A stretch of 64,000 nucleotides of DNA from Macrostomum lignano (Eukaryota): the NCBI GenBank assembly GCA_002269645.1, contig NIVC01000390.1:539516-603515 (forward strand), written 5' to 3'. Both the position numbers and the translations under genes were made by a program. The notes beneath the pieces were generated by a model. The model saw only the letters and a program-made list of their open reading frames with translations, did no database searches and was not told the origin of the DNA. This document shows positions 13,848 through 59,200 of the stretch, piece by piece. How positions within the stretch are numbered: position 1 is the stretch's first letter; each line of letters opens with the position of its first letter.

Positions 13848-15124
13848 TGCGCTGTAGAATCAGCTTACTTTTGATGCTTATAAAAATGTTTTGGTGCTTT
13901 TTATATGGCGTTTCACTGCACTGTGCTATTCTCAACGACCATAAAACTCGATTGATAAATGGTAGGGTGGGGCTTCTCCATAATGGACACGTTCATTTCT
14001 GAACACAACAGTTGCTGTACAACTTGCTTGCTCTTAAGAGTGTCCTCTGATTTTAAAACTAATTCTAATTAAACTGTACCTGTTAGAAATATAAAGCATA
14101 AAGCTGAGACTGTCCTTGGTTTAAGCTTAGCTTATGCCACATATCGATCGAACTGGGGTGCGTAAAGGAGAAACCATGTTTACATTGCCTCTTTGTCTCA
14201 TTAGCTGTCTGGACTGGCTCCGAGATTTGCAGTCTATCTGGAGTAGAACAAATTGTAACAAATGTGGCTCAGATGCATGTCAATTGCCGAGATCTGTTTC
14301 TTCCAGTGTGGTACTCAAGTGTTTTTCCATTATTTTCTGAATCAATTTGAAAAGATGTTTTTTATTTATCCATAAGTTTTACGTATTTCTATAATTCCAT
14401 TCTTTTGTGTACCTACAGTCTTCTATTTTTACACTATTTTTGCTTTTCTAAGCTTTGTGCAAATAATCCTTGAAATTTGACTTCCATTTTCAATAGCTGT
14501 TTTTCATACTTAACCAATATTGTATTGTACTAGTATATCAGCCACAAATTTTAAATTTGTTTTTATCTGATACTTAATACACCGAATTATTAATACTTTT
14601 GCACCGGTAATTTTTTAGCGATTCAAGCGTAATTTATTGTTGGTTTTGTTGTTAAATCACCCTATTTGTGTGATTTCCTATGCTTTTTAGAGGTATTTAC
14701 AGGCCATATTTAGTTGTGTTATCCAGAAAATATTCGTTAAAGGTCTTTGTCTTTCTATGCAAAGAAACTTGGCACTAGAAACTCTGCAAGTGACCGACGG
14801 TTGGATTCGAGATTCGACCATGTGTTATTAGCTCCGAAACCATATCGGTATTAATTCTGCTTATGCTGAAAATTACAATAATGATACCGACTTGAAAACA
14901 TACACTTACTTACGAAAGTATGTGTGAAAATCCTATCAAATTATTAGAAACCAGGAACAATACTCGTATATGTACAAAATGCAATGAAAATGAGATTGAA
15001 AAAGTTATTGAAGACAAGACAATAATGCAGCTTTAAGGTTCACAATGACTTATTTTAACACTTTGAAGGTTTTTACCCCAGTATAATTTTCAGCCCATTT
15101 TCGGTTTTTATCACAGGTACTAAC

Positions 15125-15590
15125 TAGATGGGCCACTTAGGCATATATATTGAAAATCTAGCAAAATAGCCTTCTACTTTCAGTTCAGTAGCAAAGAAGA
15201 ATACATAAGCTATTGTAGAAAATAAAGGCAGCTGAAATGACTTTGATAAGTTTAGAAGCCCAAGCTTTCAAGGCGTAAACAACTTGCTAATTGGTTCAGC
15301 AATAATGTACATTGGCCAGTCCACTGAAATGTACATGTTAGCTTTAGGCTGGAACACAGATACTATAATAACTATTATTATTATAGTATCTGTGGCCTGG
15401 ACTTTCGAGAAAGGCTATAAAATTGGGGAGGGGCGGGGGGTAGTGTGGAAAGGCGCGGTTGGAGGGTTTAAGCTGGGGGCAAGTGCCAATTAAAATTAGC
15501 CTTGACTTAAAAATACATTAAAATGCTTCAGTTTAGCTTACTACTGAACTGAAAGTAGTTTACACGCAAATGTGCTGAGTGGCCCATCTA
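15125..15590. mobile_element. MITE-like element inserted in the first TRIM spacer
   Basis: TAGATGGGCCACT (15125) pairs with AGTGGCCCATCTA (ends 15590). An inner pair is TACTTTCAGTTCAGTAG / CTACTGAACTGAAAGTA. The segment is absent from the homologous spacer copies; no clear TSD. Confidence 0.55.
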
Positions 15591-18500: not shown

Positions 18501-18785
18501 AGGTATAGAAGCGTGGGTAGTGTTGTGGAATCTATAACTTCCACTAGCAAACTTTGACAAGCAAGCTTCATACATCAATTGTACATTATTATACTGCTCA
18601 AAATTTTTACCAGTTTTAAAAAAACAGCTACAGTTAAGACAAGTTTTGCGGCTCTTTATTTTATCATTCATCTGTAAATAGGTTATTGTAGTAAATAGTT
18701 TAATAACGAGATAGGCCTATCATTCTGTCAGTTCTATATCCAAAGAATTCAGAAATGTATAATAAATTATTACTTTCTGCCATCC

Positions 18786-22159: not shown

Positions 22160-24257
22160 TGCGCTTTAAGATCAGCTTGCTTTCTGCTTCTAAAAATGTT
22201 TTGTTGTTTCACTGTCTGCTATATTCACAGAATTTATAGAAGTAGACTGATGAAGAGAGGAAAAACTCAATCGATATTTGGTATGTGGGGCTTCTCTCTA
22301 TTGGACGCAATCATTTCTAAGCAGAACATGGCTGTACAACTTGTTTGGTTATGTTTTTGATGGCGTCATCAGATTCCTGAAACAAATTCTACTTTGGATC
22401 AGCTACTTAGAAATATAAATAAAAGTTATGGATTTTCATTCAAAGGCATAAAATGCATTATTATTCAGTCGTTTTATAACCTGTAGAAATCTTACAGATT
22501 CAAGATACGCTCGTAGTTGCTATGTGCATTGTGCACTGCTTTACGCTCGTATCTAAGCTCTGTTCCTGTCTAAAGAAATGATAATAGTAGGTTCAGGCTG
22601 TCCTCTGCTTAAAGCTTAGCTTATAGCATACCAAAAATCGATTGATTTTTACACAGCTATTTTTTGTCGTCATTTACTGGGACTGGTCATCACCGAGGTT
22701 TGCCGTCTTTTTCAGAGGTAGAACATATTGTAACAAACTGTGGTTCACAGATCCATACCAATTTGCTATTTGCCAGGTTTATTTTATCGCATTGTAGTTG
22801 TCTAGTCTTTTCCAGTCTTTTCTGAAGCTCCGTAAAAGAGGACTTTTTTTTATCCAATAATTTCTTCTTATATAATTAACCTTTTATGTGGAAAATGTTA
22901 CTATTTTTGGTACGGTGTGCTTTGTTTACCGGTAGAGCTTTGTGCAATAAATAAAAAAGTTTTTTTTCCTTTTTTCAGTAGAACTTTTTCCTACTTAACC
23001 ACAATATATTTTTACTGTATATCTGCCACATTTAAAATTTGTTTTAATCAGATAATTAATACACTGGCTGATTAATACTATTGTACTTGTTATTGCAGTT
23101 TTTATGGGATTATTTATTGTTTTTTTGTTACACCGCCGTATTTGTGTGATTAACTAGATTTCTTCAAAACAAACCACCAGTCATATTTAAGCTTTGTTAT
23201 CCAGAAAATATTTGTTAAAGGTCTTTGTCTTTGCTATGCCAAGAAACTTGGCACTAGAAACCCTGGAAGTGAGCCGGCAGGGTAAAGAGGATTCGGCAAT
23301 GAGTTGTTGAATCTGAAACCAAGTCGCTATGAATTTTGGTTATTCTGACTTTTACGTCATGACACTGACTTGAAATGCATGTATAGGAGTAGCTACACAC
23401 GAGAGTAGAATGCTATAAAATGCTTGAAAAACCAGGAACGTGTCTGAAAAATGGCCTTTTTCTTGACAGATAATATAATATACTCTTATACTTTGCATAT
23501 AATATTCAATAATAAACCTTTTTCAATCTGATTTTTATCAGATTTTCGATGTTATTTGTCAATTTAACAGCCGTCAATATTTTATGTAGGCTAATAGTTT
23601 GAGTCAGCAAACAAGTTCAAGTATAGTATAACTTATTATAGTTTTAGCTTCAGTACACTACTTTTGCTTGCTGAAGTTTGCTTGAATGTGTTCAGCTTCC
23701 ACTGCACTCAACAGGCAGCTTGTCAATATTTTCTTGCCGATTACTAAGGGAATGTCTTGTGGCCACAGTTTTGTAGTTTATGAGGCTCATGGGAGCTAGT
23801 TATTGGGTGAAGTGCTATGCAGTATTTTTAGTGGTCTCTCTGTCACCTATTGGCGTTGCCATTTTTGACGAATCAAAATTGAATGCAAATTTCTGATAAA
23901 TTGCGCATGCGCTACTTTATCGCCAGCAACAAAGCAACGGCTTTCAATGCTTCAGTAGGTAAGATTAGCAATCTGCGCCCCCTCCGTTTGTGATTGATAT
24001 GGGCAGTAATGTCTCAACGGTTGTGTGAGTAGGCTACTTCATCCAGAATACGTAGCTTACTCACAGGTAATTGAAAAGATCCCAAATCATATGGGATTTA
24101 GTATGCAGGAAGAATAGCATCTGTAGGGCGTAAATGAGTGCCTTTCATTAGCCATGAGGCTGTGTTTTGTGAAGTAGGACTTACAAACCTGTGCTTTTTA
24201 TTCACTCCAAATCGTACTATTTTTTGTTTAACTAATAAACCTTTCAGCAAACTGGCC

Positions 24258-26054
24258 ATGGCAACCAAAGATGAATTACCGTCAGCTGAGCAGCTGCTGA
24301 ACTGCTCCGTGTGTCACCGCATGGTCTCCGATCCCAGGCTGTTGCCATGCTCACACTCTGTGTGTCTCCGCTGTGTGGACTCAGTCAGAGATCCCACGGA
24401 CAGGCGCACTGGAAGCTGCCCTGTCTGTCAGGCAAAACTTGAGCTGCCGCAGAACTCAAATCAGCTCCATCGAGACGTCATGAAGTTTCGATTAGCGGAA
24501 AGTGTCAAGGCCTCCGTAGTCAGTACGAAGCCATGCACTCATTCTGACTGCAAGAAAATGTCAAAAAGCGTGTCAGCCTTGTCGAGCCGAGCCATGTGCG
24601 AGCAGCATCTGCAGGCGGAGCTGGACCGGCTGGCTGCAGAGGCGGCCTCACTGAGAGAGCCGGTCGCGGCTGCACTGGCGCCAGCAAGCCGTCTCTCAGG
24701 AATTTGTGGTCGAGCGGCAGAGAAGAAGCAGAGTCTGGAGGCCACGCAGCGAGAGGTGGAGTCGAAGTTCGAGAGACTTCGAGAGCAGCTCGAGGACGCA
24801 GAGACGCTTGCGTTGAAGGCAGTTCGGATCGACATTGAGAGGAGCTCGAGCTGCAGTGAGAGGGCAGAGTCGATTCGAGCTCAGATGGAGCAGTTTCAGA
24901 GTATGGGTGAGAGCTGGTCGGACTTGCAGACTGCAGGCCTCAGTGCAGTGCAGCTGGTCGATGAGACGAAGAGAGCACTGCGTCAGCTTGAGCACCTTGA
25001 CGACTCGTTTGCGACAGTCTCTGATGTAGTGAAGTCAACAGTTCAGGCCAGTGTGGAGAGTTTGAAGGCCAGCAATGAAAAACTATGCAGTGAATTGGAG
25101 GTTCTTCTTGATCGGAAAGTTTCAGGTGGCTCGGTGTTATCGCTTAAAGATTCAAAGCCTGTTGGATTTGAGTTCGCTCCTCTCTTTGTAGTCTGCTTGT
25201 CGGGTGTGAAGCTCATGTTGGACTCAAATTTGTATGTCTGTAAACTGAATGGCAGCCTTCCAACTGGCGCTACTCAGCTACCAAAGTCGATCATGTTTGT
25301 CATCTTCAAACGGTCGAATTATTTCGATTCCAAGCAAGAATTTCAACTATTTTCGCTTCCTAATTGCATCCCAATTTTCGGAGCGCGATTTGCCTTGCAG
25401 TTTCCGAATTCGTATTACTCTCGTACTGAAACGATTGAAGCCATTTTTGGCGCTTCTTCTGGGTGTTTTGTTGTCGCTATTTATGGAAAACTCTTCACTG
25501 CAGATGCCAGTGGAAAATTGATAAAGTCCGTTGGCATAGAGGATAGCAAACTGTGGCACTTTTCTCCGGAATCAGACCAGCTCACGGTTTCTCACTCAAG
25601 CTGTGGTGTCCAGTATGTCTCTGTGTTCAACATCAATCTGGAAAAAATTCGAACCGTAGTGATTTCTGCTTCTTCCATCTCGTCAGTGTTCGCCGTTGGG
25701 CCGAAATTCATGTTGGTAGACTTTGGCGACGGCAAGGTGTCGAGAGTTGATGTAGACAGTCGCAGCATCTCCGAGCTGGCTCAGCTTGACAGACTGGTTG
25801 GTCGACACCGTCGGACCACTGCAGAGCCTGGTGCCTTTGCGCTGTTCTTTGGCGCTGGCAATGCGGTATTTGTTGAAGGCAAGCATGCTGTGGCCGTGAA
25901 CAAGAGCGGACAGGTGGTGCAGGCTCTGCAGCTGAAGAACAGGGTGTCGAGAACTGCAACTGTTGTTCGGATGGCGAACGAATACTATCTGGTCATGCTC
26001 AGTGCATCCTGCAACTCCATGGAGCTTGTGTCAGTTGACCCGACTTGCTTTTGA
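24258..26054 (+). CDS. TRIM-like E3 ligase copy 3, intronless, 598 aa, with a divergent C-terminal domain
   Basis: ATG at 24258 (MATKDELP), just after a CTTTCAG. RING CSVC..DPRLLPCSHSVCLRC..CPVC; coiled-coil core near-identical to copies 1 and 2. Confidence 0.85.
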   Translation: MATKDELPSAEQLLNCSVCHRMVSDPRLLPCSHSVCLRCVDSVRDPTDRRTGSCPVCQAKLELPQNSNQLHRDVMKFRLAESVKASVVSTKPCTHSDCKKMSKSVSALSSRAMCEQHLQAELDRLAAEAASLREPVAAALAPASRLSGICGRAAEKKQSLEATQREVESKFERLREQLEDAETLALKAVRIDIERSSSCSERAESIRAQMEQFQSMGESWSDLQTAGLSAVQLVDETKRALRQLEHLDDSFATVSDVVKSTVQASVESLKASNEKLCSELEVLLDRKVSGGSVLSLKDSKPVGFEFAPLFVVCLSGVKLMLDSNLYVCKLNGSLPTGATQLPKSIMFVIFKRSNYFDSKQEFQLFSLPNCIPIFGARFALQFPNSYYSRTETIEAIFGASSGCFVVAIYGKLFTADASGKLIKSVGIEDSKLWHFSPESDQLTVSHSSCGVQYVSVFNINLEKIRTVVISASSISSVFAVGPKFMLVDFGDGKVSRVDVDSRSISELAQLDRLVGRHRRTTAEPGAFALFFGAGNAVFVEGKHAVAVNKSGQVVQALQLKNRVSRTATVVRMANEYYLVMLSASCNSMELVSVDPTCF

Positions 26055-27563: not shown

Positions 27564-28669
27564 ATGTCCCTAGTCCCGTGGCGTTTCGACAGCCCCTACG
27601 CTGACGAGCGCAACAGTCCGGTGCGCAACTTCTGTCTGGCTGGCCATCGTCTGGCCATTGTGCAGGACTTGACTAGCGGACCTATCGGACCGGCTGAGGG
27701 CACCACCGGTAGGCGGCTGTGGAGTGCCGGATTCCTTCTGGTAATTTTGCAAGTGAAGTAGGCGGAGTGAGGTGGGTGCCCAAGTAGAGGAGGCGGAGTG
27801 AGGTGGGTGTGCAAGTATAAAAGGAGGCGGAGTGAGGTGGGTGTACAAGTAAAGGAGGTGGAGTGAGGTGGGTGTGCAAGTAAAGGATCGGCGGAGTGAG
27901 GTGGGTGCCAAATTAAGGAGGTGGAGTGAGGTGGACGTGAAAGTAAATGAGGCGGAGTGAGGTGGGTGTGCAAATAAAGGAGGCGGAGTGAGGTGGGTGT
28001 GCAATGAACAGGGCGGATGCGGAGTGAGGTGGGGCTTGCTAGAGACGTAATCAATGACGTAACCCTTAACTATTGGACCATTTCCAGGCCAATTTAATCT
28101 CTAAATCAGCGGATTGCCTACCACCCGAGCTTCGACGCTCTTTGTCCATCGGCCACCAGCGTCAGCGCCAAGTGCTGGAGCTGGGCGCCGGTTGCGGCCT
28201 GCCATCGCTGGTGTGCGCCTGCCGCGGTGCCCAGGTGGTGGCCACCGACTCAGCCGACTCTCTGCCGCACCTTCGCCGGTCAATCGACGCCAATGCAAGT
28301 TTGGCTGACCAGACAAAGACCTCCATTGAAGTTGCCACATTAGACTGGGCCAATCCAAACAAAGAGCTGCTACTTGGCCGCGATTGGCTGGCTGTCATCG
28401 GCGCCGATTTGTTCTTTGATCCTGCCGCCTCGGCGGCTCTGTTTGACTCGACGCTGCGGCCGCTGCTGCAGTCCCGGCCGGGTCTTGTCTGCGCCTTTGT
28501 GTACAAGCGGCGCGGCCTGGCCGGCGAGGCGGAGTTTCTCGACAGACTGCGGCAGGCGGCTGGTGATGGCCGGCTGGAGTGGAGCAGCGAAGAGCTGCAG
28601 CCAATGCCGGAGTTCGCGGATCCGAGCCAGCACCGTCTGGTGACTGTGCGGTCCAAGGGCTGCGGCTGA
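27564..28669 (+). CDS. METTL21/Methyltransf_16-family protein lysine methyltransferase, 252 aa
   Basis: Exons 27564-27740 and 28088-28669 (phase 0, GT-AG). Motifs GTTGRRLWSAGFLLANL, VLELGAGCGLPSL, VVATD, LDW and VIGADLFF. Confidence 0.85.
27768..28035. repeat. ~30-bp intronic minisatellite (GGCGGAGTGAGGTGGGTGTGCAAGTAAAGGA)
   Basis: About 9 tandem copies inside the methyltransferase intron. Confidence 0.85.
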
Positions 28670-29358: not shown

Positions 29359-32300
29359 ATGAAACCAAAGCCCGTGCAGCCTCCCCGGCTCGCTTCATCG
29401 GCCTCCGAGCTCGGCGTCAAACGGCCGGCCGAGAAGCGCCGCGAAGCCAAGCAGAAAAAGAAGCAGCAGAAAGCCAATGCGAAAAAGCAATTGAAAGAGA
29501 AACGCCAGCAACAGTCGGCTGACGTTTCTATGCGAGACCATAGCGTCCTTGACAACAGTCGCCATAGCAACCGCGAGTCGGCCGATGAAGACGACGACGA
29601 CGATGAGGTGGCGCTGAACCCGGATTTCAAATTCGACCTGCCAGCCGCCAAGCCTCATCAACCGCTTTCCCAGCCTCCTGAGCCCAAGCTGCGCGCCCAC
29701 GGCGAGAAGACCAACGTTGACGCTCTCATACAGCGGCGCCTGCTGCGGCAGAAGCCCGCTGACGCCGACGCCGACCTGGAAGCGGCTGCCGATGACCCTG
29801 CATCCGGTTCGGCCGCTCCGCAGGCCGAAGCCCCGATCGATCCCGACCTAGTGGACGCTGACGAGGTGAAGCCGAAGGCCAAGAAGGGCCGCAAACAGGC
29901 GGCCGGGCCGGCCACGCCTGGCTTTGCGGACGAGATCGACCGGCCGGACCTGCCGGCCGGGTCCAGCTTCCTGGCTCTCAACCTGTCCCGGCCGCTGCTG
30001 CGCGCCCTGGCCGAGCTGTCCTGGTCGCGGCCGACTCCAATCCAGGCCGCCTGCGTGCCAATCGCTCTGGCCGGCCGCGACATCTGCGCGTGCGCTCGCA
30101 CCGGCAGCGGCAAGACGGCCGCCTTCCTGCTGCCCGTCATCGAGCGGCTGCTGTACAAGCCGGCCGGACCGCCTGTGACCCGCGTGCTCGTGCTCAGCCC
30201 CACCAGGGAGCTGGCCGTGCAGATTCACAGCGTGGCCGAGCAGCTGCTGCGGTATTGCGGACGGCGGGTGTCGCTGAGTTTGTCGGCCGGCGGACTGGAC
30301 CTGCGAGGTCAGGAGGCTGCGCTCAGGCAGGTCAGTCAGTCAGTCAGTCAGTCAGTCAGTCAGTCAGTCAGTCAGTCAGTCAGTCAGTCAGTCAGTCAGT
30401 CAGACCGTCAGTCAGTCAGTCCTGAAAATGCTTTCAGGAATCCTGAAATTGCATTTCATGCAAAGGGACAGCAAGTGGGCTTTCCTGATTTCAATCATGT
30501 TACTATTAGTAGTATTTCTTATATGTAAATTTAGGTACTAAGTGTGGGTAGCGATTTTTTTCGAATTCCAACCGCTTTGTTGTTTCTTTTCCGCGTAAAG
30601 TCTGTCCTACCCGCATTATAAAGTACATTTTGTACTTGATATTATCTGTAGGTTGCTGTATATTATCTTCCTAATCCTAATCAACCGCGCAGGGTCCGGA
30701 CATTGTCGTAGCAACGCCCGGCCGCCTCATCGATCACGCGCACAATGCGCCCAGCTTCCACTTGCGCAATATTGAAATTCTTGTTCTAGACGAAGCTGAC
30801 AAACTGATTGACGAGTTTTTTATTGAACAGATCAAAGAGATTGTGCGGCTGTGCTCGCCTACTCGACAGGTGCGTCTTGAATGGGTGTTTTATTATTGCT
30901 TCAGCTCACTTCAGTCTCATCTACTGATTTTCTGACTTATTCAGACCCATACTGTCTTACTCAGTCTCACCTACTGTCTCACTCAGACTCACTCACCGTT
31001 TCAACCTGTCTCACTCAGACTCACTCACCGTTTCAACCTGTCTCACTCAGACTCACTCACCGTCTCAGCCTGTCTCACTCAGACTCACTCACCGTCTCAG
31101 CCTGTCTCACTCAGACTCTCCTACTGTCTCACCCTGTCTCAACCAGACTCTCCTACTGTCTCACCCTGTCTCACTCAGACTCTCCTACTGTCTCACCCTG
31201 TCTCACTCAGACTCTCCTACTGTCTCACCCTGTCTCACTCAGACTCTCCTACTGTCTCACCCTGTCTCACCCTATCTCCCAGGTGCTGCTGTTCAGCGCC
31301 ACCATGACAGACGATGTCCGCGAGCTGTCGGCCATGGCGCTGCGCAATCCGGTGAAGCTGTTCCTCAGCGACAAGGCCGACGTCACCCTCCGCCTGCAGC
31401 AGGAGTTCGTGCGCATCCGCGAACAGCGCGAATCCGATCGGGAAGCCATAGTCGCAGCGCTGGTGCAGCGCAGCTTCAACGAGCGCTGCATCGTGTTCTG
31501 CCCGACCCGCCGGCTGTGCCATCGGATGCACGTCCTGCTCGGCCTGCTAGGCGTGTCGTGCGCCGAGTTGCACAGCTCGTTGAGCCAGGCCCAGCGGCTG
31601 GAGGCGCTAGAACGATTTCACAAGGCCGAGGTTGGCGTGCTGCTAGCCACGGATCTGGTGTCGCGAGGCCTGGATATTCAGGGCGTGCGGACCGTCATTA
31701 ACTACAGCCTGCCGGATACGCTCAAGGTGCGAAGAGCTTGGGCTTAGTAAAGTTTTCTACTATGCATATCGGTAGACTATAATAGACATCTAATATATAT
31801 TGTATTTGAAGAATTCTACAAATCGATTCTTTTTTGTCTTCCAGTTAGTAATAAAGTTACCGAACGAGACTCCCACTCTATCGTCCTTCAGATGTACACC
31901 CACCCTATCCTCATCCAGGTGTACACTCACCCCATCATTATCCAGGTGTACACTCCCACAATCCTCATCCAGGTGTACACCCACCCTATCCTCATCCAGG
32001 TGTACACTCACCCCATCCTCATCCAGGTGTACACTCACCCCATCCTTATCCAGGTGTACACTCACCCCATCATTATCCAGGTGTACACTCTCCTTATCAA
32101 TATCCAGGTGTACACTAACCTCATCCTCATCCAGGTGTACACTCACCCCATCCTCATCCAGGTGTACACCAATCCCATCCTCATCTAGGTGTACACTCAC
32201 CCCATCATTATCCAGGTGTACACTCACCCCATCATTATCCAGGTGTACACTCACCGAGTTGGCCGCACCGCCCGAGCCGGCAAGCAGGGCCTGGCCATCA

Positions 32301-32689
32301 GTCTGGCGGGAGAGGCGGAGCGGCCTCTACTGAAGCAGATTGTGCGCAAAGCGCCGATCCCCGTAAAGCTGCGCACGGTGCCAAAGTCGACAGTAGCGGC
32401 TTATCGAGAGCGCATCGCCGCCCTGGAGCCGGACGTGTCCGCCGTGATGCAGGAGGAGCGTCTCGAGTCCGCGCAGCGGGCGGCCGAGCAGTCGCTGAAT
32501 CGGGTTCAGAAGCGCCTGGAAGCGGCTGGCAGCAGCGGCAGTCGGTCGCAACAGCAGCAGCAACTGCAGCGCAACTGGTTCAGAGCCAGGGGCGGCTGCA
32601 ATTCAGCAACTGCCGGCGCCGCCAGCGGAGTCCTTGGCGCGGGAAAACTGGGGAAAGCCAGGGGGAAGAAAGCAAAAGGCAGTGCTTGA
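29359..32689 (+). CDS. DDX27: DEAD-box RNA helicase DDX27/Drs1, 679 aa
   Basis: Exons 29359-30330, 30693-30869, 31283-31726 and 32243-32689, all phase 0. Motifs PTPIQAACVP, ARTGSGKTAAF, PTRELAVQ, ATPGRLIDH, LDEAD, FSAT, RLxQEFVRIRE (DDX27-typical), RGLDI and YTHRVGRTARAG. Confidence 0.92.
30327..30421. repeat. (TCAG)n microsatellite starting at the DDX27 intron-1 donor
   Basis: CAG|GTCAGTCAGTCAG... about 22 units. Confidence 0.95.
30960..31275. repeat. ~31-bp intronic minisatellite (CTGTCTCACTCAGACTC(A/T)C...) in DDX27 intron 2
   Basis: Tandem copies run up to the acceptor at 31282. Confidence 0.85.
31889..32255 (+). repeat. 27-bp minisatellite that duplicates the DDX27 exon-4 splice acceptor
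   Basis: The unit CAG|GTGTACACTCACCCCATCATTATC occurs ~13 times; the last copy is the real acceptor plus the exon start. Confidence 0.9.
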
Positions 32690-41154: not shown

Positions 41155-42583
<1,429 letters not shown>

Positions 42584-43080
42584 GCACCGCCTGCCGTGTG
42601 CATCCTCTGCCTTGTCCTAGTTTATATAGTGTGAGGCTTAAATAATAAGTATTAGGGGAATGGATTGCTAATCTAGCCAACGTCGATATGATGAAGGAAT
42701 AGAATGGATTGCTAATCTAGCCTACTTCATTTATAATGGAATAGAATGAATTGCTAATCTAGCTAAGATTAGATTGGTAATCAAGGTAAATAATAAATCA
42801 TCCGAGTATCTTCTTGCTAATGTGGAGCAAACAGTGCTAATCAATCAATCGATCAATAAACGCAAATAAATAAGCAATGCTTTTCGTGTCATTCAAAGCT
42901 TGTTTCATTTGTTAAAATGCGCTCTTATTGTTTAAATATACTCTATTCTGATCTGATTTAAGTTTTGTGTCTGGTGTCAGGCCTCAAGTGAAAAGGAATC
43001 AGTCAGTTGTTTTATTATTTGAATTTCGTCTAGATTTTATACACAAAATAAAACAAAACAAAACAAAATACATGAAACTA

Positions 43081-45150
43081 CGGGTTCGATCCTCCAGTGT
43101 CGGCGGCTGGAGAACACGATGGCCACGGTTTTAGGCTCAGATAGCGTGAGACCGCAGCTGAGCGCCCAGCTCTCGACACGGTAGGTGAAAGCTTGGTGGG
43201 AAGAGGTCTCTTAGGCCACAGTGGCGGTATCGTCCGCATGGCCGACCTTTTGAACCGGGTCCGGGTACGGGCTGCTGAGGACTCCACCTGTATGTACCTC
43301 CACAGAGCGGGAGTGTCTCAGGAGGTGCGAGGTGGCAGTACGATGGGAGACCATGTACATGATCCAGCGAGTGAGGTGCTCAAAAAGCGCATTATTGAAA
43401 GCACCATCAATGCCGAGGAAAAGCGAGAGCGCGTATCCACTGCCGAGTACGGCGCGCTCCAGCTTGTCGGCAATGGCATGCAGCGCGCCTTCGATGAAAC
43501 GTCTAGGTGTTCCATCAGTTTGAGGAAGACGTCAGACTGATAGGGCGGTAAGCTTTGGCAAAATGATAGTCTCCCTTCCCTGGTTTGGGTATAAAGACTA
43601 CCGTGGCCCTCTTGCCAGGCCTTGGGCACGTACCCGAGGGTAATGCTGGCCTTGAAGAGGTTGCAGAGGAGCCGGGAAACCTGTCATTTTTAACTGCCTC
43701 GCGGAGGAAGGCAGGATAAATATTGTCAGGTCCCTGTGACTTGAAGGTAGAGAAGGATTTTGCGGCGGGAGCCGTCCTCTCTCTGGTAATGATGGTCGAA
43801 GCCAGGATCTGTCCAACCGGACAGTGGTCCGGTGGGCCTAGCTGCGGTGCGGCACATGGGAAAGAGATGGTGAGCATGATGTCCAGCGATTCCCCGGGGT
43901 TCTCAGCGAGCCGGCCGTCCGGTTTTTTAATGACTGAGAGCTTTGACATTTTGTCGAGGGTGAGAGCCTTAACCACGCGTGAAGTAGGGCGGGTGCCTTC
44001 TAACTCCGCGCAGTATTGGCGCCACTTGTCGGACTTGGCTTTCCTGGTTTCACGCTTAAAGTCGCGGATCGCGTCCTGATAAGCGGCCAGGTCAGCTGGG
44101 TCCTTGATCTTGCGAGTTTTCCGTTGGAGGCACTTTGCTTTGCGCCGGAGGGATCCAAGTGCCAGGTGCCACCAAGGGCGGATTTTTTGCCTTTGTAGGC
44201 CTTAGAGGACAGGAGACCTCGTGGGCTGTCAGGACGGTCTTGCTGAGCAAGTCTGCAAGGTCATCCACTTTCTGACAGGAGGTAGAAACGACGGTGGTCA
44301 GCTTGATCTGTCTGGCATTTCAGGGTTTCCGCGAAGGCCGTCCAGATCAGGTGTTCAAGTGTTCCGGACGTTCCTTTTCCGTAGGATGTTAGACTTGGGG
44401 CGAGAGGATTGCAAGAGGAAGCGAACGAAGCGATGGTCAGACAGAGACTCCTCTTCGTCCCAAACCTCCCAGTCCCTGACCAAAGGAGCCAAACCGTGGG
44501 AGACTAGGGTCACGTCGTCCGTCCATCGCCCGTTGCCGAAGGTGGGGGTTCCACCTATGCTGCGAAACTCAGTACGTATTGGTGGTGTACATGCAGATGT
44601 AAGCAAGGAGTTACTTGCCTCTGCTGTTGGAGGCATTGCTGCCACAGTGAGTGTGGTGGGCCGTTAATGTCGCCCGCCACCAGCAGATCAAACCTGCGGT
44701 TAGAGCAGTAGTCCATGAGGGAGGTGAGGTTAGGGAGGTTCGCTTCCCTCGGGTTCTCCCTCTTTCTGCCCTCAGAAGGTGCTTGGTATTGGTATATACC
44801 ATGATTTTTTATTTTTGTCAAGACATACTTTAATACAATATACAATATGGCCAGACAGAATCATAGTCCAGATTTTAACTCAATCCATCTTCCATCATCT
44901 TAGCCCAGATCTTAGCCCAGATATTAGCCCAGATCTTAGCCCAGATCTTAGTCCAGACCTTAACACAATCTTAGCCGCCAGAGCAGCCCCGAGCGAGCTC
45001 AACTCGAGCTTCCAGGAACCGATCAGCGCCAGCCCAGCTGTGCCTGGGTTGGAAAATCCAGCTATTTTTGTGCCATAATGCCGCAGTGTGCAACGGCAGC
45101 TCCCAACCCCCCTCCCCTCCGTAGCCCTCTGCACTGATTCTCGCCAATAT
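43081..45150 (-). mobile_element. Decayed non-LTR retrotransposon (APE endonuclease plus RT; R1/LOA-like)
   Basis: Minus-strand fragments: LLVAGDIN and EESLSDHRFVRF (APE); VVFIPKPGKGDYHFAKAYRPISLTS, ALHAIADKLERAVLGSGYALSLFLGIDGAFNN, HADD and GLTLSEPKTVAIVFS (RT). Frameshifted, and truncated at ~43081. Confidence 0.85.
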
Positions 45151-45441
45151 CTCAGCCGTATCTCTCACTGCTGCTGCTAGCTGCTCATATCTGAGTGCTT
45201 ACGGGTGCTCAGCAGAGCTACAGGCTTACCGCTGCTCTCCGCCTACGCTGCCGTTCCGGAGGGCGACCGGCTGCCGCCTCGGGAATTCCTAGGCGCCTGC
45301 GGCTTTTCCAATGCCTCGAACGGATCGTCCGCCGGAGCGGGCAGCGCTATAAAATCACAGCTGAAAGAACTTCCCCTCAAGCAATTATAAGTCCTCTTCT
45401 AAAAGCAGAAATTAATTCAAGCAAGCATTAATATTGAAACA

Positions 45442-46409
45442 ATGCTTTCCGAAGGAAAGTTCTTTGTTATGCTCTGCCTCGCCGTCTCGCTCGCCTCTGC
45501 TCAACCTGCTGGCCGCGCAAGACCAGCAGCGAGCAACTTGGAGCTGGCAAAGAAGCACCTGACTCACGCTGCGGATGGGCTGCAAGCCTACGTCGAGAGC
45601 ATCAGATTGGTTCGCCTGCTGAACAAGTCCATCAGTTCGTCTCTGATCGACTTCTCTGAACTGCTGCCATCTGGTGCCAGCCTACGTACTCAGCTGCACC
45701 GATTTCTGCTCATTGTTAAGCGTCTGGAGAGTCAGGAGGAGCCGCATGAGACTGGGTGAGTCTTCAGCTGCCGCTTTCTGTGATTTGTTGAGCTCCTTTC
45801 TGAAAGGTGCAAATCACTCTCTGGTTGCTTCAGGGAGACCGTAATTGCTTTAGGGAAACTCTAACTGCTTTAGGGAAACTCAAATTACTTCAGGGAAACT
45901 CTAATTGCTTCAGGGAAACTCAAATTACTTCAGGGAAACTCTAATTGCTTCTGGGAAACTCTAATTGCTTCTGGGAAACTCTAATTGCTTCTGGGAAACT
46001 CTAATTGCTTCTGGGAAACTCTAATTGCTTCTGGGAAACTCTAACTGCTTTAGGGAAACTCTAATTGCTTCAGGGAAACTCAAATTACTTCAGAGAAACT
46101 CAAATTGCTTCAGGGACATAGGAGAACTACCTACTCTATAAAATCGCACTCAATCCACTGCCACTACTATTGCCATTACCCAGGTGGCTGAACCGGCTGG
46201 AATACATCAGGCAGAACGTGGCGCAAGCCTTCGACTACGTAGGAAGCCACTTTAATGACGCGGCAGCCGCCCCGCTGAGCGCCCAGCTACCAGACCGCCT
46301 GCTGCCGCCGGTGCCGCACAAGCAGCGAGAACGTCGGTATATGCGAGACTATGTTGTGATTGACTGGCTGCACAAGCAGGTCATGCGGTCAATTCAAGAG
46401 CTCGGTTGA
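45442..46409 (+). CDS. Secreted alpha-helical protein 1, putative four-helix cytokine-like, 179 aa
   Basis: Signal peptide MLSEGKFFVMLCLAVSLASA. Exons 45442-45755 and 46184-46409 (phase 2, GTGAGT/CCAG). Paralogous to 48827-51237. Confidence 0.75.
45830..46115. repeat. 20-bp intronic minisatellite (GGGAAACTCTAATTGCTTCA)
   Basis: About 14 copies. Confidence 0.9.
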
Positions 46410-46544
46410 CCTAGTTTCAATTGAGTACATATTTGTAAAAAAAATAAATTCTATATTATAAATATCATAAATATACGTCAGAATCTACTTGTAAAATGCT
46501 GAATTGAAAAAAATCGCAAGCCTTAATCATTATTTCTTTGATAA

Positions 46545-48080
46545 ACTTTTGCTCAATGGGGAATTGCTCAGATAGTGAGTGACTCAATGGGGAATTGCTC
46601 AGATTAGTGAGTGACTCAATGGGGAATTGCTCAGATAGTGAGTGACTCAATGGGGAATTGCTCAGATTAGTGAGTGACTCAATGGGGAATTGCTCAGATT
46701 AGTGAGTGACTCAATGGGGAATTGCTCAGATTAGTGAGTGACTCAATGGGGAATTACTCTGATATTCAGCGACTCAATGGGGAATTGCTCAGATTAGTGA
46801 GTGACTCAATGGGGAATTTACTCTGATATTCAGCGACTCAATGGGGAATTGCTCAGATAGTGAGTGACTCAATGAGGAATTGCCCAGATAGTGAGTGACC
46901 AAATGGGGAATTGCTCAGATTAGTGAGTGACTCAATGGGGAATTGCTCAGATTAGTGAGTGACTCAATGGGGAATTGCTCAGATAGTGAGTGACCAAATG
47001 GGGAATTGCTCAGATTAGTCAGTGACTCAATGGGGAATTACTCTGATATTCAGTGACTCAATGGGGAATTGCTCAGATAGTGAGTGACTCAATGGGGAAT
47101 TGCTCAGATAGTGAGTAACTCAATGGGGAATTGCTCAGATTAGTGAGTGACTCAATGGGGAATTGCTCAGATAGTGAGTGACTCAATGGGGAATTGCTCA
47201 GATAGTGAGTGACTCAATGGGGAATCGCTCAGATATTCAGTGACTCAAAGGGGAATTGCTCAGATAGTGAGTGACTCAATGGGGAATCGCTCAGATATTC
47301 AGTGACTCAATGGGGAATCGCTCAGATATTCAGTGACTCAATGGGGAATCGCTCAGATATTCAGTGACTCAATGGGGAATCGCTCAGATATTCAGTGACT
47401 CAATGGGGAATTGCTCAGATAGTGAGTGACTCAATGGGGAATTGCTCAGATAGTGAGTGACTCAATGGGGAATTGCTCAGATAGTGAGTGACTCAATGGG
47501 GAATTGCTCAGATAGTGAGTGACTCAATGGGGAATTGCTCAGATAGTGAGTGACTCAATGGGGAATTGCTCAGATAGTGAGTGACAAAATGGGGAATTGC
47601 TCAGATTAGTGAGTGACTCAATGGGGAATTGCTCAGATTAGTGAGTGACTCAATGGGGAATTGCTCAGATAGTGAGTGACTCAATGGGGAATTGCTCAGA
47701 TAGTGAGTGACTCAATGGGGAATTGCTCAGATAGTGAGTGACAAAATGGGGAATTGCTCAGATAGTGAGTGACCAAATGGGGAATTGCTCAGATAGTGAA
47801 TGACAAAATGGGGAATTGCTCAGATTAGTGAGTGACTCAATGGGGAATTGCTCAGATTAGTGAGTGACTCAATGGGGAATTGCTCAGATAGTGAGTGACA
47901 AAATGGGGAATTGCTCAGATTAGTGAGTGACTCAATGGGGAATTGCTCAGATTAGTGAGTGACTCAATGGGGAATCGCTCAGATATTCAGTGACTCAATG
48001 GGGAATTGCTCAGATAGTGAGTGACTCAATGGGGAATTGCTCAGATTAGTGAGTGACTCAATGGGGAATTGCTCAGATAC
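46545..48080. repeat. 31/32-bp minisatellite (CAATGGGGAATTGCTCAGA(T)TAGTGAGTGACT)
   Basis: About 48 contiguous copies with no unique spacers. Confidence 0.95.
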
Positions 48081-48826
48081 ATGTAGATAGACTCAATGGC
48101 AATCATTATAAGTACAATAGTGATGATTAGATTCTAAAGCAAATAATAAGTAACTCCGTGCATACATCGTTATAGATTTTGAACTGTAAAACGTGATTCC
48201 AAATCAGGAAAAGTTCGCAATGTACTTTGATTGTGCCAGCATAATTTTCAATCTATTCACTATTTTCTAAACCTGATTGCATAATGAATGAAACTCTCAT
48301 TTGCCTGTGGAATCATAACCGCATAGCTACTAAATCTGTAGTCTAAAAATAGGGGATCTTGTCCCGCGCGCAGTACTCGCACAGGCCGAGAACTTCTTCC
48401 TCCCTGCACCTTCTGCCCGCACAGCACTCGGGTTGGGGTGCTAAACGAGTTATTTTTAGCAGAACCACTCAACACAGCGCAGTTCGCCGCGCAGAAAAAG
48501 TACATTGCCTTATAGCTCAGCTGAACTATTTCTTAGAAATGCTATCGCAAAATTTTCGTTCGCAAGCACCGCTGCAGTTCCATTTCTGCTCCTAGTAGAA
48601 ACGCACCGTACCCTTGATCGGGGACTACTTGGGATTTCCAAAAGAAATTTTTTGGTGTTTCTATTCTCAATTTTGTGCTGCTTTTTTTACTTAAAACAAA
48701 GTTCGTGTCCCCTGGAATTTCCAACATCTGATATGCGACCGCAATGGCATCAGCAACATATAAGCCCCGCTTCTGTCTTAACCTCTGCTGCTCAATTCAA
48801 CAGTCGGTTCCTGTTTTTTGGTTTTC

Positions 48827-51237
48827 ATGGCAACGCGAACTGTTTGGGCGCCAGTTGTTTTGCTTTGGTGCTTCGTGGCCGCTCACTGTACGGCCGCTCC
48901 TGGAGGCCATGTGGTTAAGAACCACTGCTTCACCATTCATTTGACCAGATCGCTGCGCTCAGGTGAGAGCAATGTTTATGAAGCTTTGGAAATCTGTGCG
49001 ATGCTGTAGCTTTTATGATTTTTGCTCTTCACTTCTTTGGCTACGAAGACAAAGTCGAAGCACTTTTTATTAAAGTTATTAAAGTACTTTTCTAATTTAG
49101 TCATATCGCTTCTCCTGCTCTCTCAGTCTGATCTCCAGTCACCGATCTCTATTCCCATTCTTCCCTATTTTAACCTATTTCTACTCTATTCTATTCTACT
49201 CTATTCTATTCTACTCTATTCTACTCTACTCTATTCTATTCTACTCTATTCTATTCTACTCTATTCTATTCTACTCTATTCTACTCTATTCTACTCTATT
49301 CTACTCTATTCTATTCTACTCTATTCTATTCTACTCTATTCTATTCTACTCTATTCTATTCTATTCTATTCTATTCTACTCTATTCTATTCTACTCTATT
49401 CTACTCTATTCTACTCTATTCTATTCTACTCTATTCTATTCTACTCTATTCTAGTCTATTCTACTCTATTCTATTCTACTCTATTCTAGTCTATTCTACT
49501 CTATTCTAGTCTATTCTACTCTATTCTATTCTACTCTATTCTATTCTACTCTATTCTATTCTACTCTATTCTATTCTACTCTATTCTATTCTACTCTATT
49601 CTAATCCATTCAAGTAGACTCCACTACACTGCACTCAGTACTAATAATCTCTAATGTGCCTCTATTGCGCAACACAATCTCTTAATCCTCCTCCCCCAAT
49701 TTGCAGCCGACTCCCTGCTGAGAGGCATGGACATCGTGCGCAAACACCTGGCCCAGGCAATGCAGCTCATGGACAGCTATCAGACTGGCGTGTTCTCGGC
49801 TCGGCTCAGAAACAAAACCCTGCCAGCTGGGGTCGCCAACTTCCAGCTGACGGAGCTCCAGCGAGTCGGCGCAGGAGTTCTTGAACTCTTTGACCGGCTG
49901 GCCGTGACCTGCTTGATCGCGGAGCATCTGGAGGCTCAGGAGAAGCAAGTCTTGGCCACGTCCAGGTCTGCATTTGGCTTTGAAGTGCTTTAAATAGAAT
50001 ACTGAACAATACAGTACTTACAGTAGTCAATACTACTCACAGTAGTCAATGCAGTACTTACAGTAGTCAATACAGTACTTACAGTAGTCAATACAGTACT
50101 TACAGTAGTCAATACAGTACTTACAGTAGTCAATACAGTACTTACAGTAGTCAATACAGTACTTACAGTAGTCAATAAAGTACTTACAGTAGTCAATAAA
50201 GTACTTACAGTAGTCAATACAGTACTCACAGTCATAGTAGTCAATACACTACTTACTGTAGTCAATACAGTACTTACAGTAGTCAATACTACTTACAGTA
50301 GTCAATAAAGTACTTACAGTAGTCAATACAGTACTCACAGTCATAGTAGTCAATACAGTACTTACAGTAGTCAATACAGTACTTACAGTAGTCAATACAG
50401 TACTTACAGTAGTCAATACAGTACTTACAGTAGTCAATACAGTACTTACAGTAGTCAATACAGTACTTACAGTAGTCAATACTACTTACAGTAGTCAATA
50501 AAGTACTTACAGTAGTCAATACAGTACTCACAGTCATAGTAGTCAATACACTACTTACTGTAGTCAATACAGTACTTACAGTAGTCAATACAGTACTTAC
50601 AGTAGTCAATACAGTACTTACAGTCATAGTAGTCAATACAGTACAGTACAATACAGTACAGTACAATACTGTACAATATTTATTATACTGTGTACAATAC
50701 AGTACAATATAGTTACAATACAATACATTAGTAAATACAGTTAGTTATAGTAGTCAATGCAGTACTCACAGTAGTCAATGCAGTACTCACAGTAGTCAAT
50801 GCAGTACTCACAGTAGTCAATGCAGTACTCACAGTAGTCAATACAGTTAGTTATATTAGTCAATGCAGTACTTGCAGTAGTCATTCAAATTTCGATCACA
50901 AAGCATAACAAAATTCCCAATTCGCAGGTGGAGCCGGCAGCTAGCTGACATCAAGTCCGAGCTGGTGAAGTCCCTGTGCTATTCACACTTGCTGCTCCAT
51001 CTGTCCAGCAGCTACTTGTCAGCTGACAGTCTGCAGCACATCCGGTCACTCTATGGCCAGTCTCTGATTCCCATCGAGCGCCTGCCGCACTCGGAGCGCG
51101 AATGGCGCCACCTTAGGGACTACGCGGTGACCGGCGCTCTGCAGAGGGCGGTTCGCCAGTCCATCTCTGAGCTGCAGCTGATGATGCTGCAGGTCGCTGG
51201 CGGGCTTAGCAACCCAAGCTTAGCAACCCCAGCTTAG
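48827..51237 (+). CDS. Secreted alpha-helical protein 2, putative four-helix cytokine-like, 234 aa
   Basis: Signal peptide MATRTVWAPVVLLWCFVAAHCTA. Exons 48827-48962, 49707-49965 and 50928-51237 (phases 1 and 2; total 705 nt, in frame). Shares KHL..A....Y, RL.NK, LE.QE, W...L..I and PH..RE.R..RDY.V...L...V..SI.EL with protein 1. Confidence 0.75.
49175..49605. repeat. (CTATT/CTACT)n pentanucleotide microsatellite
   Basis: Direct inspection; intron 1 of protein 2. Confidence 0.95.
50008..50880. repeat. 21-bp minisatellite (TACAGTACTTACAGTAGTCAA)
   Basis: Intron 2 of protein 2; source of the TTVSTVL ORFs. Confidence 0.95.
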
Positions 51238-51772
51238 CAACCCCAGCTTAGCAACCCCAGCTTAGCAACCCCAGCTTAGCAACCCCAGCTTAGCAACCCC
51301 AGCTTAGCAACCCCAGCTTAGCAACCCAAGCTTAGCAACCCCAGCTTAGCAACCCCAGCTTAGCAACCCCAGCTTAGCAACCCCAGCCTAGCAACCACAG
51401 CTTAGCAACCCCAGCTTTGCAACCACAGCTTATCAACCACAGCTTAGCAACCACAGCTTAGCAACCCCAGCCTAGCAACCACAGCTTAGCAACCCCAGCT
51501 TAGCAACCCCAGCTTAGCAACCACAGCTTATAGCAACCCCAGTTTAGCAACCACAGCTTAGCAACCACAGCCTAGCAACCCCAGCTTAGCAACCCCAGCT
51601 TAGCAACCCCAGCTTAGCAACCCCAGCTTATAGCAACCCCAGCTTAGCAACCACAGCTTAGCAACCCCAGCTTAGCAACCCCAGCGTAGCAACCACAGCT
51701 TATAGCAACCCCAGTTAAGCAACCACAGCTTAGCAACCCCAGCCTAGCAACCACAGCTTAGCAACCCCAGCG
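51205..51772. repeat. 14-bp minisatellite (CTTAGCAACCCCAG) beginning inside the last codons of protein 2
   Basis: About 40 copies; the first copies encode LSNPSLATPA and the TAG stop. Confidence 0.95.
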
Positions 51773-56200: not shown

Positions 56201-59200
56201 CCAAAATCCCAAATTTATGGGGAACATTAGTTCCCAGTGAAATCGGAATCCAAAATCCCAACTTTATGGGGAAAATTGTCCCAGTGAAATCGCAGTCCAG
56301 AATCACGAAAGTTTGGGGGAAATATCCCAGACATTTTAGATTTTAAGCGTCTCAAAATTTATGATTAAAAAATCCCCAAAACCTGCACACCCCACCTGTT
56401 TTCCATTCCCTCAACTCCACTCTTTGCAGGATGTCGACGAGATCGCTCTGGGCTCCGACTGGCAAGACGCTTTGAACGACGCGGTGGCAGCCACGGAGGT
56501 CTTCATCCCCTTGGTGACCCCCCGGTACGGCGCCACCCAGTGGACCAATAGAGAGGTGAAGCTGGCGGACGTGCTTGGCAAAGAGATTCTGCCTATCAAC
56601 TTCATCTCCGACTGGCCACCTCGCTGCCTAGCGATCCAGTTTGCCACCACGCAGTTTGTGCCCTGGTCTGGCGCGTGTAAGTGCTTGAGTTGGGGCTCGG
56701 GGCGCATTGGGACTCGGTTTTGGCTGTACTGGGACTCGGTTTTGAGTTGTACTGGGACTCGCTTTCAGGCTGTACTGGGACTCGCTTTCAGGCTGTACTG
56801 GGACTCGCTTTCAGGCTGTACTGGGGCTCGCTTTCAGGCTGTACTGGGACTCGCTTTCAGGCTGTACTGGGACTCGCTTTCAGGCTGTACTGGGACTCGC
56901 TTTCAGGCTGTACTGGGGCTCGCTTTCAGGCTGTACTGGGACTCGCTTTCAGGCTGTACTGGGACTCGCTTTCAGGCTGTACTGGGACTCGCTTTCAGGC
57001 TGTACTGGGACTCGCTTTCAGGCTGTACTGGGACTCGCTTTCAGGCTGTACTGGGACTCGCTTTCAGGCTGTACTGGGACTCGCTTTCAGGCTGTACTGG
57101 GACTCGCTTTCAGGCTTCATTGCGCAATTGTATCTCGTTTTCTAACTGATCAATAACTAACGTCTACTAATTAATCTATTCATAATCAGCCATATATGTA
57201 GAGAAAATAAAGCGCCTATAGCCAAGCCTAACTAAAGCAACAACCCAGTTTCTGACTAATTAGACAGACTTTATTTAAGGTATTTCAACCTAGCGACCTC
57301 ATTCTAGCAGTAGTGCTCACATAACAGTCACAATAGCTATACCCTCTGTTTTTGATAAAAAATCTTATCTGAATTTTAGTTGCGAAAGCGGGTTAACGAG
57401 TGTAGCCATGAAGTGCGGTTGGCAATCTGCTAATTTGGCAGGTGAATGCCATGTGCTAATGACCATTCAGCTGCGCTGTCTTGCGTGGTGCTTTTCTAGA
57501 ATAGAATGTTTTCGGTGGTGGTGGTTCAAGTCTCTCGAATTTTTATATTGGGAGGCTCTCTGCTGTATCTTCTGAGGGTCATTCAGTGAACTGCTGTATC
57601 TTCTGAGGGTCATTCAGTGAACTGCTGTATCTTCTGAGGGTCATTCAGTGAACTGCTGTATCTTTTGAGGGTCATTCAATGAACTGCTGTATCTTCTGAG
57701 GGTCATTCAGTGAACTGCTGTATCTTCTAAGGGTCATTCAGTGAACTGCTGTATCTTCTGAGGGTCATTCAGTGAACTGCTGTATCTTCTGAGGGTCATT
57801 CAGTGAACTGCTGTATCTTCTGAGGGTCATTCAGTGAACTGCTGTATCTTCTAAGGGTCATTCAGTGAACTGCTGTATCTTCTGAGGGTCATTCAGTGAA
57901 CTGCTGTATCTTCTGAGGGTCATTCAGTGAACTGCTGTATCTTCTGAGGGTCATTCAGTGAACTGCTGTATCTTCTAAGGGTCATTCAGTGAACTGCTGT
58001 ATCTTCTGAGGGTCATTCAGTGAACTGCTGTATCTTTTGAGGGTCATTCAGTGAACTGCTGTATCTTCTGAGGGTCATTCAGTGAACTGCTGTATCTTCT
58101 AAGGGTCATTCAGTGAACTGCTGTATCTTCTGAGGGTCATTCAGTGAACTGCTGTATCTTTTGAGGGTCATTCAGTGAACTGCTGTATCTTCTGAGGGTC
58201 ATTCAGTGAACTGCTGTATCTTCTAAGGGTCATTCAGTGAACTGCTGTATCTTCTGAGGGTCATTCAGTGAACTGCTGTATCTTCTAAGGGTCATTCAGT
58301 GAACTGCTGTATCTTCTGAGGGTCATTCAGTGAACTGCTGTATCTACTGAGGGTCATTCAGTGAACTGCTGTATCTTCTGAGGGTCATTCAGTGAACTGC
58401 TGTATCTACTGAGGGTCATTCAGTGAACTGCTGTATCTACTGAGGGTCATTCAGTGAACTGCTGTAGGCTCTGAGGGTCATTCAGTGAACTGCTGTAGGC
58501 TCTGAGGGTCATTCAGTGAACTGCTGTAGGCTCTGAGGGTCGTTCAGTGAACTGCTGTAGGCTCTGAGGGTCATTCAGTGAACTGCTGTATCTTCTGAGG
58601 GTCGTTCAGTGAACTGCTGTATCTTCTGAGGGTCGTTCAGTGAACTGCTGTATCCTCTGAGGGTCATTCAGTGAACTGCTGTAGCCTCTGAGGGTTCTTC
58701 CTCTAACACTGAGCCATCCTGCTAGATGCCAGACGGATTTCCTCCAACCCGCAGACGACATCGAGTCGGCCAACATCAATGACGAGGCCGGCCGGGTGGC
58801 CGAGGAGATCCGGCGGCAGTTCGACGCCAACAAGCGGCGCCCGCCGGAGTCCAAGTCGGATGAGAGAGGAAGCGCGATGGGGCCGCCTGTGAGTTTGAGA
58901 AGGAAAGGGCGGGCTTAGAGGAGTGCCAGAGAATATAATGGAGTGCCAGAAACTATACGGGGAGAGTTCCAGAGACTATAGAAGAGCGCCACAGACTATA
59001 GAAGAGCGCCAGAGACTATTGTGGTGATGGGGCTCAAGGGCTCGGTCCTTTCGTGCCCCTTTCCCAGACCCGGATTCGCGTACTGACCCTGGCTGCGGTC
59101 CTCCACTGACACGCGTACGACGCGGTGTCTGTCGGGACTAGGCTGCTCGAGCGTACGACGCACGACAGCCTACAGACTCGCGTACGACGCAGAGCTGCTT

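Follow-up and report, generated by a model that had tools for sequence, protein, structure and literature searches.

The window analysed here, 64,000 nucleotides of the Macrostomum lignano assembly GCA_002269645.1 (contig NIVC01000390.1, positions 539,516 to 603,515 of the forward strand), contains a tandem pair of genes, referred to as gene 1 and gene 2, that are predicted to encode small, secreted, helical proteins (Table 1). We favour, with a probability of roughly 0.6, the reading that they represent a selected, secreted orphan pair of helical proteins, which probably fold into a four-helix bundle and act as extracellular ligands. A preliminary description, made from the letters of the window, had proposed a tandem pair of secreted proteins with the layout of long-chain four-helix cytokines, and its account of the genes was borne out: both genes are intact, all three introns are bounded by GT and AG with polypyrimidine acceptors, and signal-peptide features can be read from both sequences. 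The intron common to the two genes indeed lies in phase 2 directly before a conserved tryptophan and splits the preceding codon (GG/G TGG in gene 1 and AG/G TGG in gene 2), and every peptide that had been quoted for the four segments A to D is present in the two proteins. Compared to gene 1, gene 2 possesses an additional phase-1 intron at its 5' side and an N-terminal extension of 22 residues. The GC content at third codon positions (0.66-0.73 in both genes) resembles that of the neighbouring genes and is unlike that of the AT-richer introns, and apart from repeat-derived frames no competing long open reading frame (ORF) was found on either strand at the two genes. The TATA-like element of gene 2 is weaker than the box of gene 1 and was missed by a strict scan for TATAAA. 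At the other end of gene 2, a 14-bp minisatellite (51204-51771, GCTTAGCAACCCCA) supplies the stop codon and the last ~11 codons. As 14 is not a multiple of three, the TAG of the repeat unit reaches the reading frame within three units, so that the C-terminal tail of the gene 2 protein is repeat-derived and probably of recent origin.

The two proteins share 26% identity over 163 aligned residues (BLASTP E=2e-11), and alignment z-scores of 12-20 against shuffled sequences are far above chance; by these measures, the genes are true paralogues. A third paralogue was not found when both proteins were compared to the whole window by tblastn. Both signal peptides have a charged start, a hydrophobic core of 11-15 residues and small residues at positions -3 and -1, and cleavage is predicted from the sequence at SLASA/QP in gene 1 and AHCTA/AP in gene 2, which would leave mature proteins of ~159 and ~211 residues, respectively. 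The mature gene 1 protein contains no cysteine. Both proteins kept one N-x-S/T sequon where helix A ends (N61KS and N81KT). The motifs that they share comprise KHL inside helix A and RL-NK[ST] at the end of this helix, LE-QE where helix B finishes, and PH--RE-R--RDY and SI-EL in helix D and the stretch preceding it. The residues kept between the paralogues are mostly polar or charged, and conservation is strongest in helices A and D as well as in the segment preceding D.

A second copy of the locus is present in the same assembly (GCA_002269645.1, NIVC01003594.1 68848-88976), which is collinear with the window, ~97.5% identical to it and holds both genes at ~14934-15977 and ~17458-19649 of its own sequence. 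Exon 1 of gene 1 is 100% identical in this copy, and over 1,245 coding bases of both genes the comparison of the window with the second copy yielded eight synonymous and four non-synonymous changes. The ratio of non-synonymous to synonymous differences per site (pN/pS) of 0.17 (binomial P=0.003) shows that purifying selection acts on the reading frames. The NCBI annotation of the second copy (public assembly Mlig_3_7) includes neither gene, and no gene was called there 3' of ALKBH4, the neighbour of the pair. Four 1-bp deletions are found there in the exons of the two genes, but the adjoining, conserved exon 2 of ALKBH4 shows even more indels in the same comparison (9 in 510 nt), so that the deletions are assembly noise rather than decay. 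For this reason, a pseudogene reading derived from the frameshifts of the second copy was rejected, and frame-breaking assembly indels probably explain the absence of gene calls. The lack of annotation in the public assembly, the lack of the proteins in protein databases, the four deletions and the minisatellites and retroelement fragment that surround the genes would all agree with non-functional chance ORFs or decaying pseudogenes embedded in repeat-rich DNA. Such an origin is nevertheless very improbable for five exons whose phases are correct and whose splice sites are canonical, for two copies that at 26% identity have both retained open frames, signal peptides and the common intron, for a pN/pS of 0.17, and for 1-bp deletions at or below the indel noise of a conserved housekeeping exon.

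Table 1. Positions of the two paralogous genes and their elements in the window, with helix labels as predicted (aa, amino acids; CDS, coding sequence).
Feature	Position	Strand	Description
Gene 1 TATAAA box	45348..45353	+	94 nt 5' of ATG; pattern scan
Gene 1 CDS	45442..45755 + 46184..46409	+	2 exons, 179 aa; translation and splice sites
Gene 1 exon 1	45442..45755	+	Signal peptide, helix A, sequon, A-B link, helix B; ends in phase 2
Gene 1 signal peptide	aa 1-20, 45442-45501	+	Translation, sequence reading
Gene 1 N61-K-S glycosylation sequon	45622-45630	+	Translation
Gene 1 intron	45756..46183	+	428 nt, GTGAGT...CAG; 20-bp minisatellite 45825-46116 makes up most of the intron
Gene 1 exon 2	46184..46409	+	Trp106, helix C, Pro-rich C-D link, helix D; stop TGA 46407-46409
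Gene 1 AATAAA polyadenylation signal	46443..46448	+	34 nt 3' of stop; pattern scan
Intergenic 31-bp minisatellite	46552..48079		Between the paralogues; ~49 copies
Gene 2 TATAAG (TATA-like) element	48759..48764	+	~65 nt 5' of ATG; read from sequence
Gene 2 CDS	48827..48962 + 49707..49965 + 50928..51237	+	3 exons, 234 aa; translation and splice sites
Gene 2 exon 1	48827..48962	+	Signal peptide and 22-residue N-terminal extension; ends in phase 1
Gene 2 signal peptide	aa 1-23, 48827-48895	+	Translation, sequence reading
Gene 2 intron 1	48963..49706	+	744 nt, GT..AG; 10/15-bp minisatellite 49179-49611
Gene 2 exon 2	49707..49965	+	Helix A, sequon, A-B link, helix B; ends in phase 2
Gene 2 N81-K-T sequon	49811-49819	+	Translation
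Gene 2 intron 2	49966..50927	+	962 nt, GT..AG; position and phase match the gene 1 intron
21-bp minisatellite in gene 2 intron 2	50007-50883	+	Lies within the intron
Gene 2 exon 3	50928..51237	+	Trp133, helix C, C-D link, helix D, short tail; stop TAG 51235-51237

Homology searches covered a space of ~15 billion proteins overall. In Pfam, both proteins produced nothing but noise at E<=10 (Oleosin, PsiA and Nrd1-Seb1_dom2 with E ~0.1, well below the cut-offs); no cytokine family (IL6, LIF_OSM, CNTF, leptin and others) and no apolipophorin-III, FAR or Taeniidae-antigen family was among the matches. A word-indexed search of 5.8 billion clusters with each protein separately gave zero matches, as did an exhaustive HMMER search with a profile of the two sequences against 1.84 billion representatives, in a library compiled from public genomes, at E<=0.001. 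The profile matched no cytokine chain among all PDB sequences, where the sole and irrelevant match was DinG (E=0.26), and none of the 369 pattern matches from a metagenome scan with back-translated motifs could be confirmed. Within this search space, the pair is a lineage-restricted orphan secreted family that has no detectable relative outside M. lignano.

Structure models were calculated with AlphaFold2 from only two sequences, the alignment of the paralogues. For the gene 1 precursor, the two-row alignment yielded a predicted local distance difference test score (pLDDT) of 42 and a predicted template modelling score (pTM) of 0.34, and Foldseek searches with this model returned meaningless matches with root-mean-square deviations >14 Å. 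The model of the mature gene 2 protein was somewhat better (pLDDT 51, pTM 0.43). In the PDB, its best Foldseek matches were up-down four-helix bundles of designed proteins together with the sensor domains of Tar and PcaY, which likewise have four helices (E 0.07-0.6), and it aligned sequentially to up-down bundles with template modelling scores of 0.70-0.75 normalised to the target; no cytokine was among the 50 matches listed, and the viral library of Foldseek gave nothing useful. Taken by the letter, this outcome speaks against the cytokine fold that the preliminary description had put forward, but a model of this quality is too poor to refute it, and the present data neither confirm nor refute the cytokine interpretation.

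The proposal of four amphipathic segments agrees with the models as far as two independent runs placed helices on all four of them and one more, short helix on the C-D link, albeit at the low confidence stated above. According to DSSP, helices span residues 30-60, 81-98, 104-127 and 152-178 in the gene 1 model and 46-80, 86-123, 132-158 and 188-224 (precursor numbering) in the gene 2 model, so that the two low-confidence models differ on the start of helix B. Two ways of parsing the chains result. In a cytokine-like parse of gene 1, the A-B link (61-80), the B-C link (99-103) and the C-D link (128-151) comprise 20, 5 and 24 residues; within the A-B link lie the sequon, a PSG break and a mini-helix with the conserved pattern F-x-[ST]EL, and the C-D link is Pro-rich and likewise includes a mini-helix. 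In a plain parse, short turns connect four segments, with lengths of ~31, 38, 35 and 27 residues for gene 1 and of ~35, 38, 43 (27+11 as drawn by AlphaFold2) and 37 residues for gene 2. The long A-B loop of the preliminary description is seen in the cytokine-like parse of gene 1, whereas the gene 2 model assigns the same stretch to a helix B of 38 residues, and the long Pro-rich C-D loop holds for gene 1 (5 Pro in ~22 residues) but hardly for gene 2 (2 Pro). A break in the putative long helix B is suggested by the Pro in gene 1, the GAG in gene 2 and indels of 2-3 residues between the paralogues at this site, while the 3-4 spacing of hydrophobic residues in gene 2 seems, by eye, to continue across the GAG. 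The long-short-long loop layout is compatible with a cytokine fold, and four similar helices with short turns fit the sequences as well.

The reading that we prefer sees in the locus a tandem pair of real, as yet unannotated protein-coding genes of M. lignano that would have originated from an old local duplication. Their products would be small secreted proteins, probably N-glycosylated and nearly all alpha-helical with four main helices, for which a four-helix bundle is the most likely fold, and they would act outside the cell as diffusible ligands of a cell-surface partner. Because the residues kept despite only 26% identity form mostly polar or charged motifs, a binding role appears more likely than bulk structural secretion, and extracellular binding, as a ligand, is the most likely function to be deduced from the pattern of conservation. 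Several points weigh against this reading. The ligand role is derived solely from the conservation pattern of two sequences, and the low confidence of the models (pLDDT 42 and 51) makes the four-helix bundle a provisional assignment. The genes were predicted from sequence alone; the proteins themselves are missing from the collections searched, and hence unannotated in the public M. lignano proteomes, and the annotation of the second copy has neither of them. The 3' end of gene 2 is the least certain part of the gene models and may be mis-modelled, because it enters a minisatellite that contains the stop codon and because a pattern scan detected no polyadenylation signal nearby.

A more specific interpretation is that the genes encode class I long-chain helical cytokines with up-up-down-down topology and crossover A-B and C-D loops, which as fast-evolving tandem ligands of an orphan class I receptor, be it a gp130/Domeless-like chain, CRLF3 or a CRLF3-like protein, would drive JAK/STAT signalling. 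Size, secretion and putative glycosylation fit this interpretation, and so do four main predicted helices that are connected by a B-C link of 5-8 residues, while the A-B and C-D links each reach 20 residues or more. Helix breakers occur in both long links (PSG or GAG in the former, a Pro-rich stretch in the latter) along with a mini-helix, as is the case in many long-chain cytokines, and the regions of strongest conservation, namely helices A and D plus the segment before D, are those through which known cytokines contact their receptors. Negative searches would be expected, because helical cytokines lose all sequence similarity between phyla. Ligands of class I cytokine receptors are known from vertebrates and from flies (Unpaired). 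CRLF3 is described as an orphan class I receptor that is conserved across eumetazoans and for which an endogenous ligand is not known from any animal (PMC8063046), and a STAT homologue was reported from planarians by authors who ask whether interferon-like secreted factors exist (PMC8797187). Speaking against a JAK-dependent pathway, a census of the tyrosine kinases of Schistosoma mansoni contains no Jak family member in its Tables 2-3 (PMC3135232). Within the paper library searched, nothing specific was retrieved on flatworm helical cytokines, JAK/STAT in Macrostomum or CRLF3 in Platyhelminthes. Searches of Pfam and the PDB and the HMMER scan linked the proteins themselves to no cytokine by sequence or profile, the better AlphaFold2 model resembles up-down bundles with no cytokine among the 50 matches listed, and in this model the supposed long A-B loop is a part of helix B. 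The likeness of helix D to CNTF, which the preliminary description had pointed out, did not hold up. In a comparison with human CNTF (identical to 1CNT over residues 1-187), three short collinear likenesses can be seen, namely SYV...LNK at the end of helix A, LLARLLEDQQ versus LIAEHLEAQE at the end of helix B, and VRSIHDL versus VMRSIQEL in helix D. However, hhalign (P=0.36), BLASTP (E=7) and Smith-Waterman or global alignments (z <= 1, the same as for reversed CNTF) identify them as chance, and the CNTF-like helix D was rejected for this reason. Both paralogues also lack the LIFR-type FxxK motif (site 3) with which helix D would begin: in the segment preceding this helix, RERRYMRDY in gene 1 versus EREWRHLRDY in gene 2, R and W, respectively, stand at the aromatic position, and the residue three places further on is not Lys. 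Taken together, we regard it as quite unlikely that the pair represents cytokines of this class.

Alternatively, the proteins could be secreted up-down-up-down bundles without a signalling function, such as carriers of lipids or other hydrophobic ligands, in the manner of insect apolipophorin-III, nematode FAR proteins or cestode lipid binders of the antigen-B type, or secretions of glands, of the seminal fluid or of immune effector type. Four segments of similar length with short turns have the proportions of an up-down bundle, all Foldseek matches of the better model are of this type, and the mature gene 1 protein lacks cysteine as do exchangeable apolipoproteins. Fast-evolving, species-restricted secreted genes are moreover typical of reproductive and gland products in Macrostomum, which also counts in favour of this alternative. 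What makes it rather doubtful is that apolipophorin-III, FAR and Taeniidae-antigen families gave no Pfam match at E<=10, that the kept positions are largely polar or charged motifs and not confined to a hydrophobic face, and that Pro and Gly-rich breaks and the indels of 2-3 residues would fall midway along the putative long helix B. The resemblance of the better model to up-down bundles also has to be read in the light of the tendency of AlphaFold2 to arrive at such bundles by default when given so few sequences.

Like the vertebrate cytokines of the IL-6/LIF/CNTF type, the flatworm proteins are small, secreted, putative glycoproteins for which four main helices of ~18-35 residues are predicted; their B-C link is short, whereas the A-B and C-D links are longer and include mini-helices, and helices A and D are best conserved. 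The rule that long-chain helical cytokines have a signal peptide does not apply to CNTF. The pair differs from these cytokines in the lack of any sequence, profile or structural match (the latter with models of pLDDT 42 and 51), of FxxK and of conserved disulfides. In addition, the intron common to the flatworm genes is situated in the B-C link, unlike in genes of the CNTF/LIF type, which have an intron near the end of helix A. Similarity to Drosophila Unpaired (Upd1-3) consists in secretion, putative glycosylation, predicted helicity and tandem arrangement of the genes, as well as in a very fast sequence evolution that defeats BLAST beyond close relatives, but Upd proteins are about twice as long. 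The exhaustive HMMER scan detected no arthropod protein at E<=0.001, and no direct pairwise comparison with Upd was made. Proteins of the apolipophorin-III, FAR or cestode antigen-B type resemble the pair in having a signal peptide, ~160-210 residues, an all-alpha composition and few or no cysteines, and as in apolipoprotein-type bundles, segments of similar length could pack in up-down fashion, to which the only, albeit weak, Foldseek matches correspond. In contrast to these proteins, the pair has no Pfam match, is conserved in polar motifs and shows Pro and Gly breaks in the putative long helix.

In the surroundings of the pair, nearly every intron or spacer between 41000 and 56000 of the window has its own private minisatellite, including the 2.4-kb spacer between the paralogues. 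Examples are (ACT)x124 in the ALKBH4 intron (41651-42023), a 20-bp unit x15, a 31-bp unit x49, a 10/15-bp unit x28-43, a 21-bp unit x41, a 14-bp unit x40, and units of 22 bp and 52 bp x19. The ALKBH4-like dioxygenase gene itself has two exons (41155-41502 and 42075-42584, +) and is 99% identical to the M. lignano protein A0A1I8I4R1, with best matches outside Macrostomum of ~45% identity, which assigns the window to M. lignano, a free-living macrostomorph flatworm. An apparent 1-bp frameshift is found in the window at 42280-42282 (GGG versus GGGG in the second copy), and the window exon yields the 99% UniRef match in one frame 3' of this slip; the second copy has ~8 other indels in this exon, so that both sequences carry frame-breaking single-base indel errors. 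Between ALKBH4 and gene 1, at ~43100-44700 (-), lies a reverse-transcriptase-like ORF (43515..43976, …FIPKPGKGDYHFAKAYRPISLTSS…), which by eye looks like a fragment of a non-LTR (long terminal repeat) retroelement. Further upstream, an ORF for a lysine methyltransferase (Methyltransf_16) and the gene of a DEAD-box helicase, with repeat-filled introns, are located at 28073-28669 and 29359-32689 (+), respectively, and the presence of the same DEAD-box helicase upstream in the second copy confirms its collinearity with the window. Three tandem single-exon genes for RING-finger proteins of ~600 aa are present at 12054-13847, 18786-20591 and 24255-26054 (+). All three share a central block of ~145 residues (SALSSRAMCEQHLQ... 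to ...LRQLEH) at almost 100% identity, while the flanks of the third copy are only ~50% identical to those of the other two, a pattern that suggests gene conversion of a putative coiled-coil core. Downstream of the pair, an ORF at 56361-57149 (+) encodes a TIR_2 domain (E=6e-8) followed by a tandem repeat in the coding frame, with a possible upstream exon from ~53299. Scans for Rfam families and tRNAs gave no matches.

Orphan secreted genes are common in flatworms, and as long as neither a fold nor a receptor is assigned, the pair is of moderate interest. Even if the cytokine idea fails, the locus provides two selected secreted genes that are missing from the public annotation of M. lignano and a family that has no relative in ~15 billion proteins. 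If the idea were true, the pair would be the first case of helical cytokines in a flatworm and one of the first in spiralians as a whole. M. lignano is a regeneration model in which RNA interference and transgenesis are routine, so that the cytokine idea is directly testable, and a secreted four-helix pair would be a concrete ligand candidate in a tractable regenerating animal.

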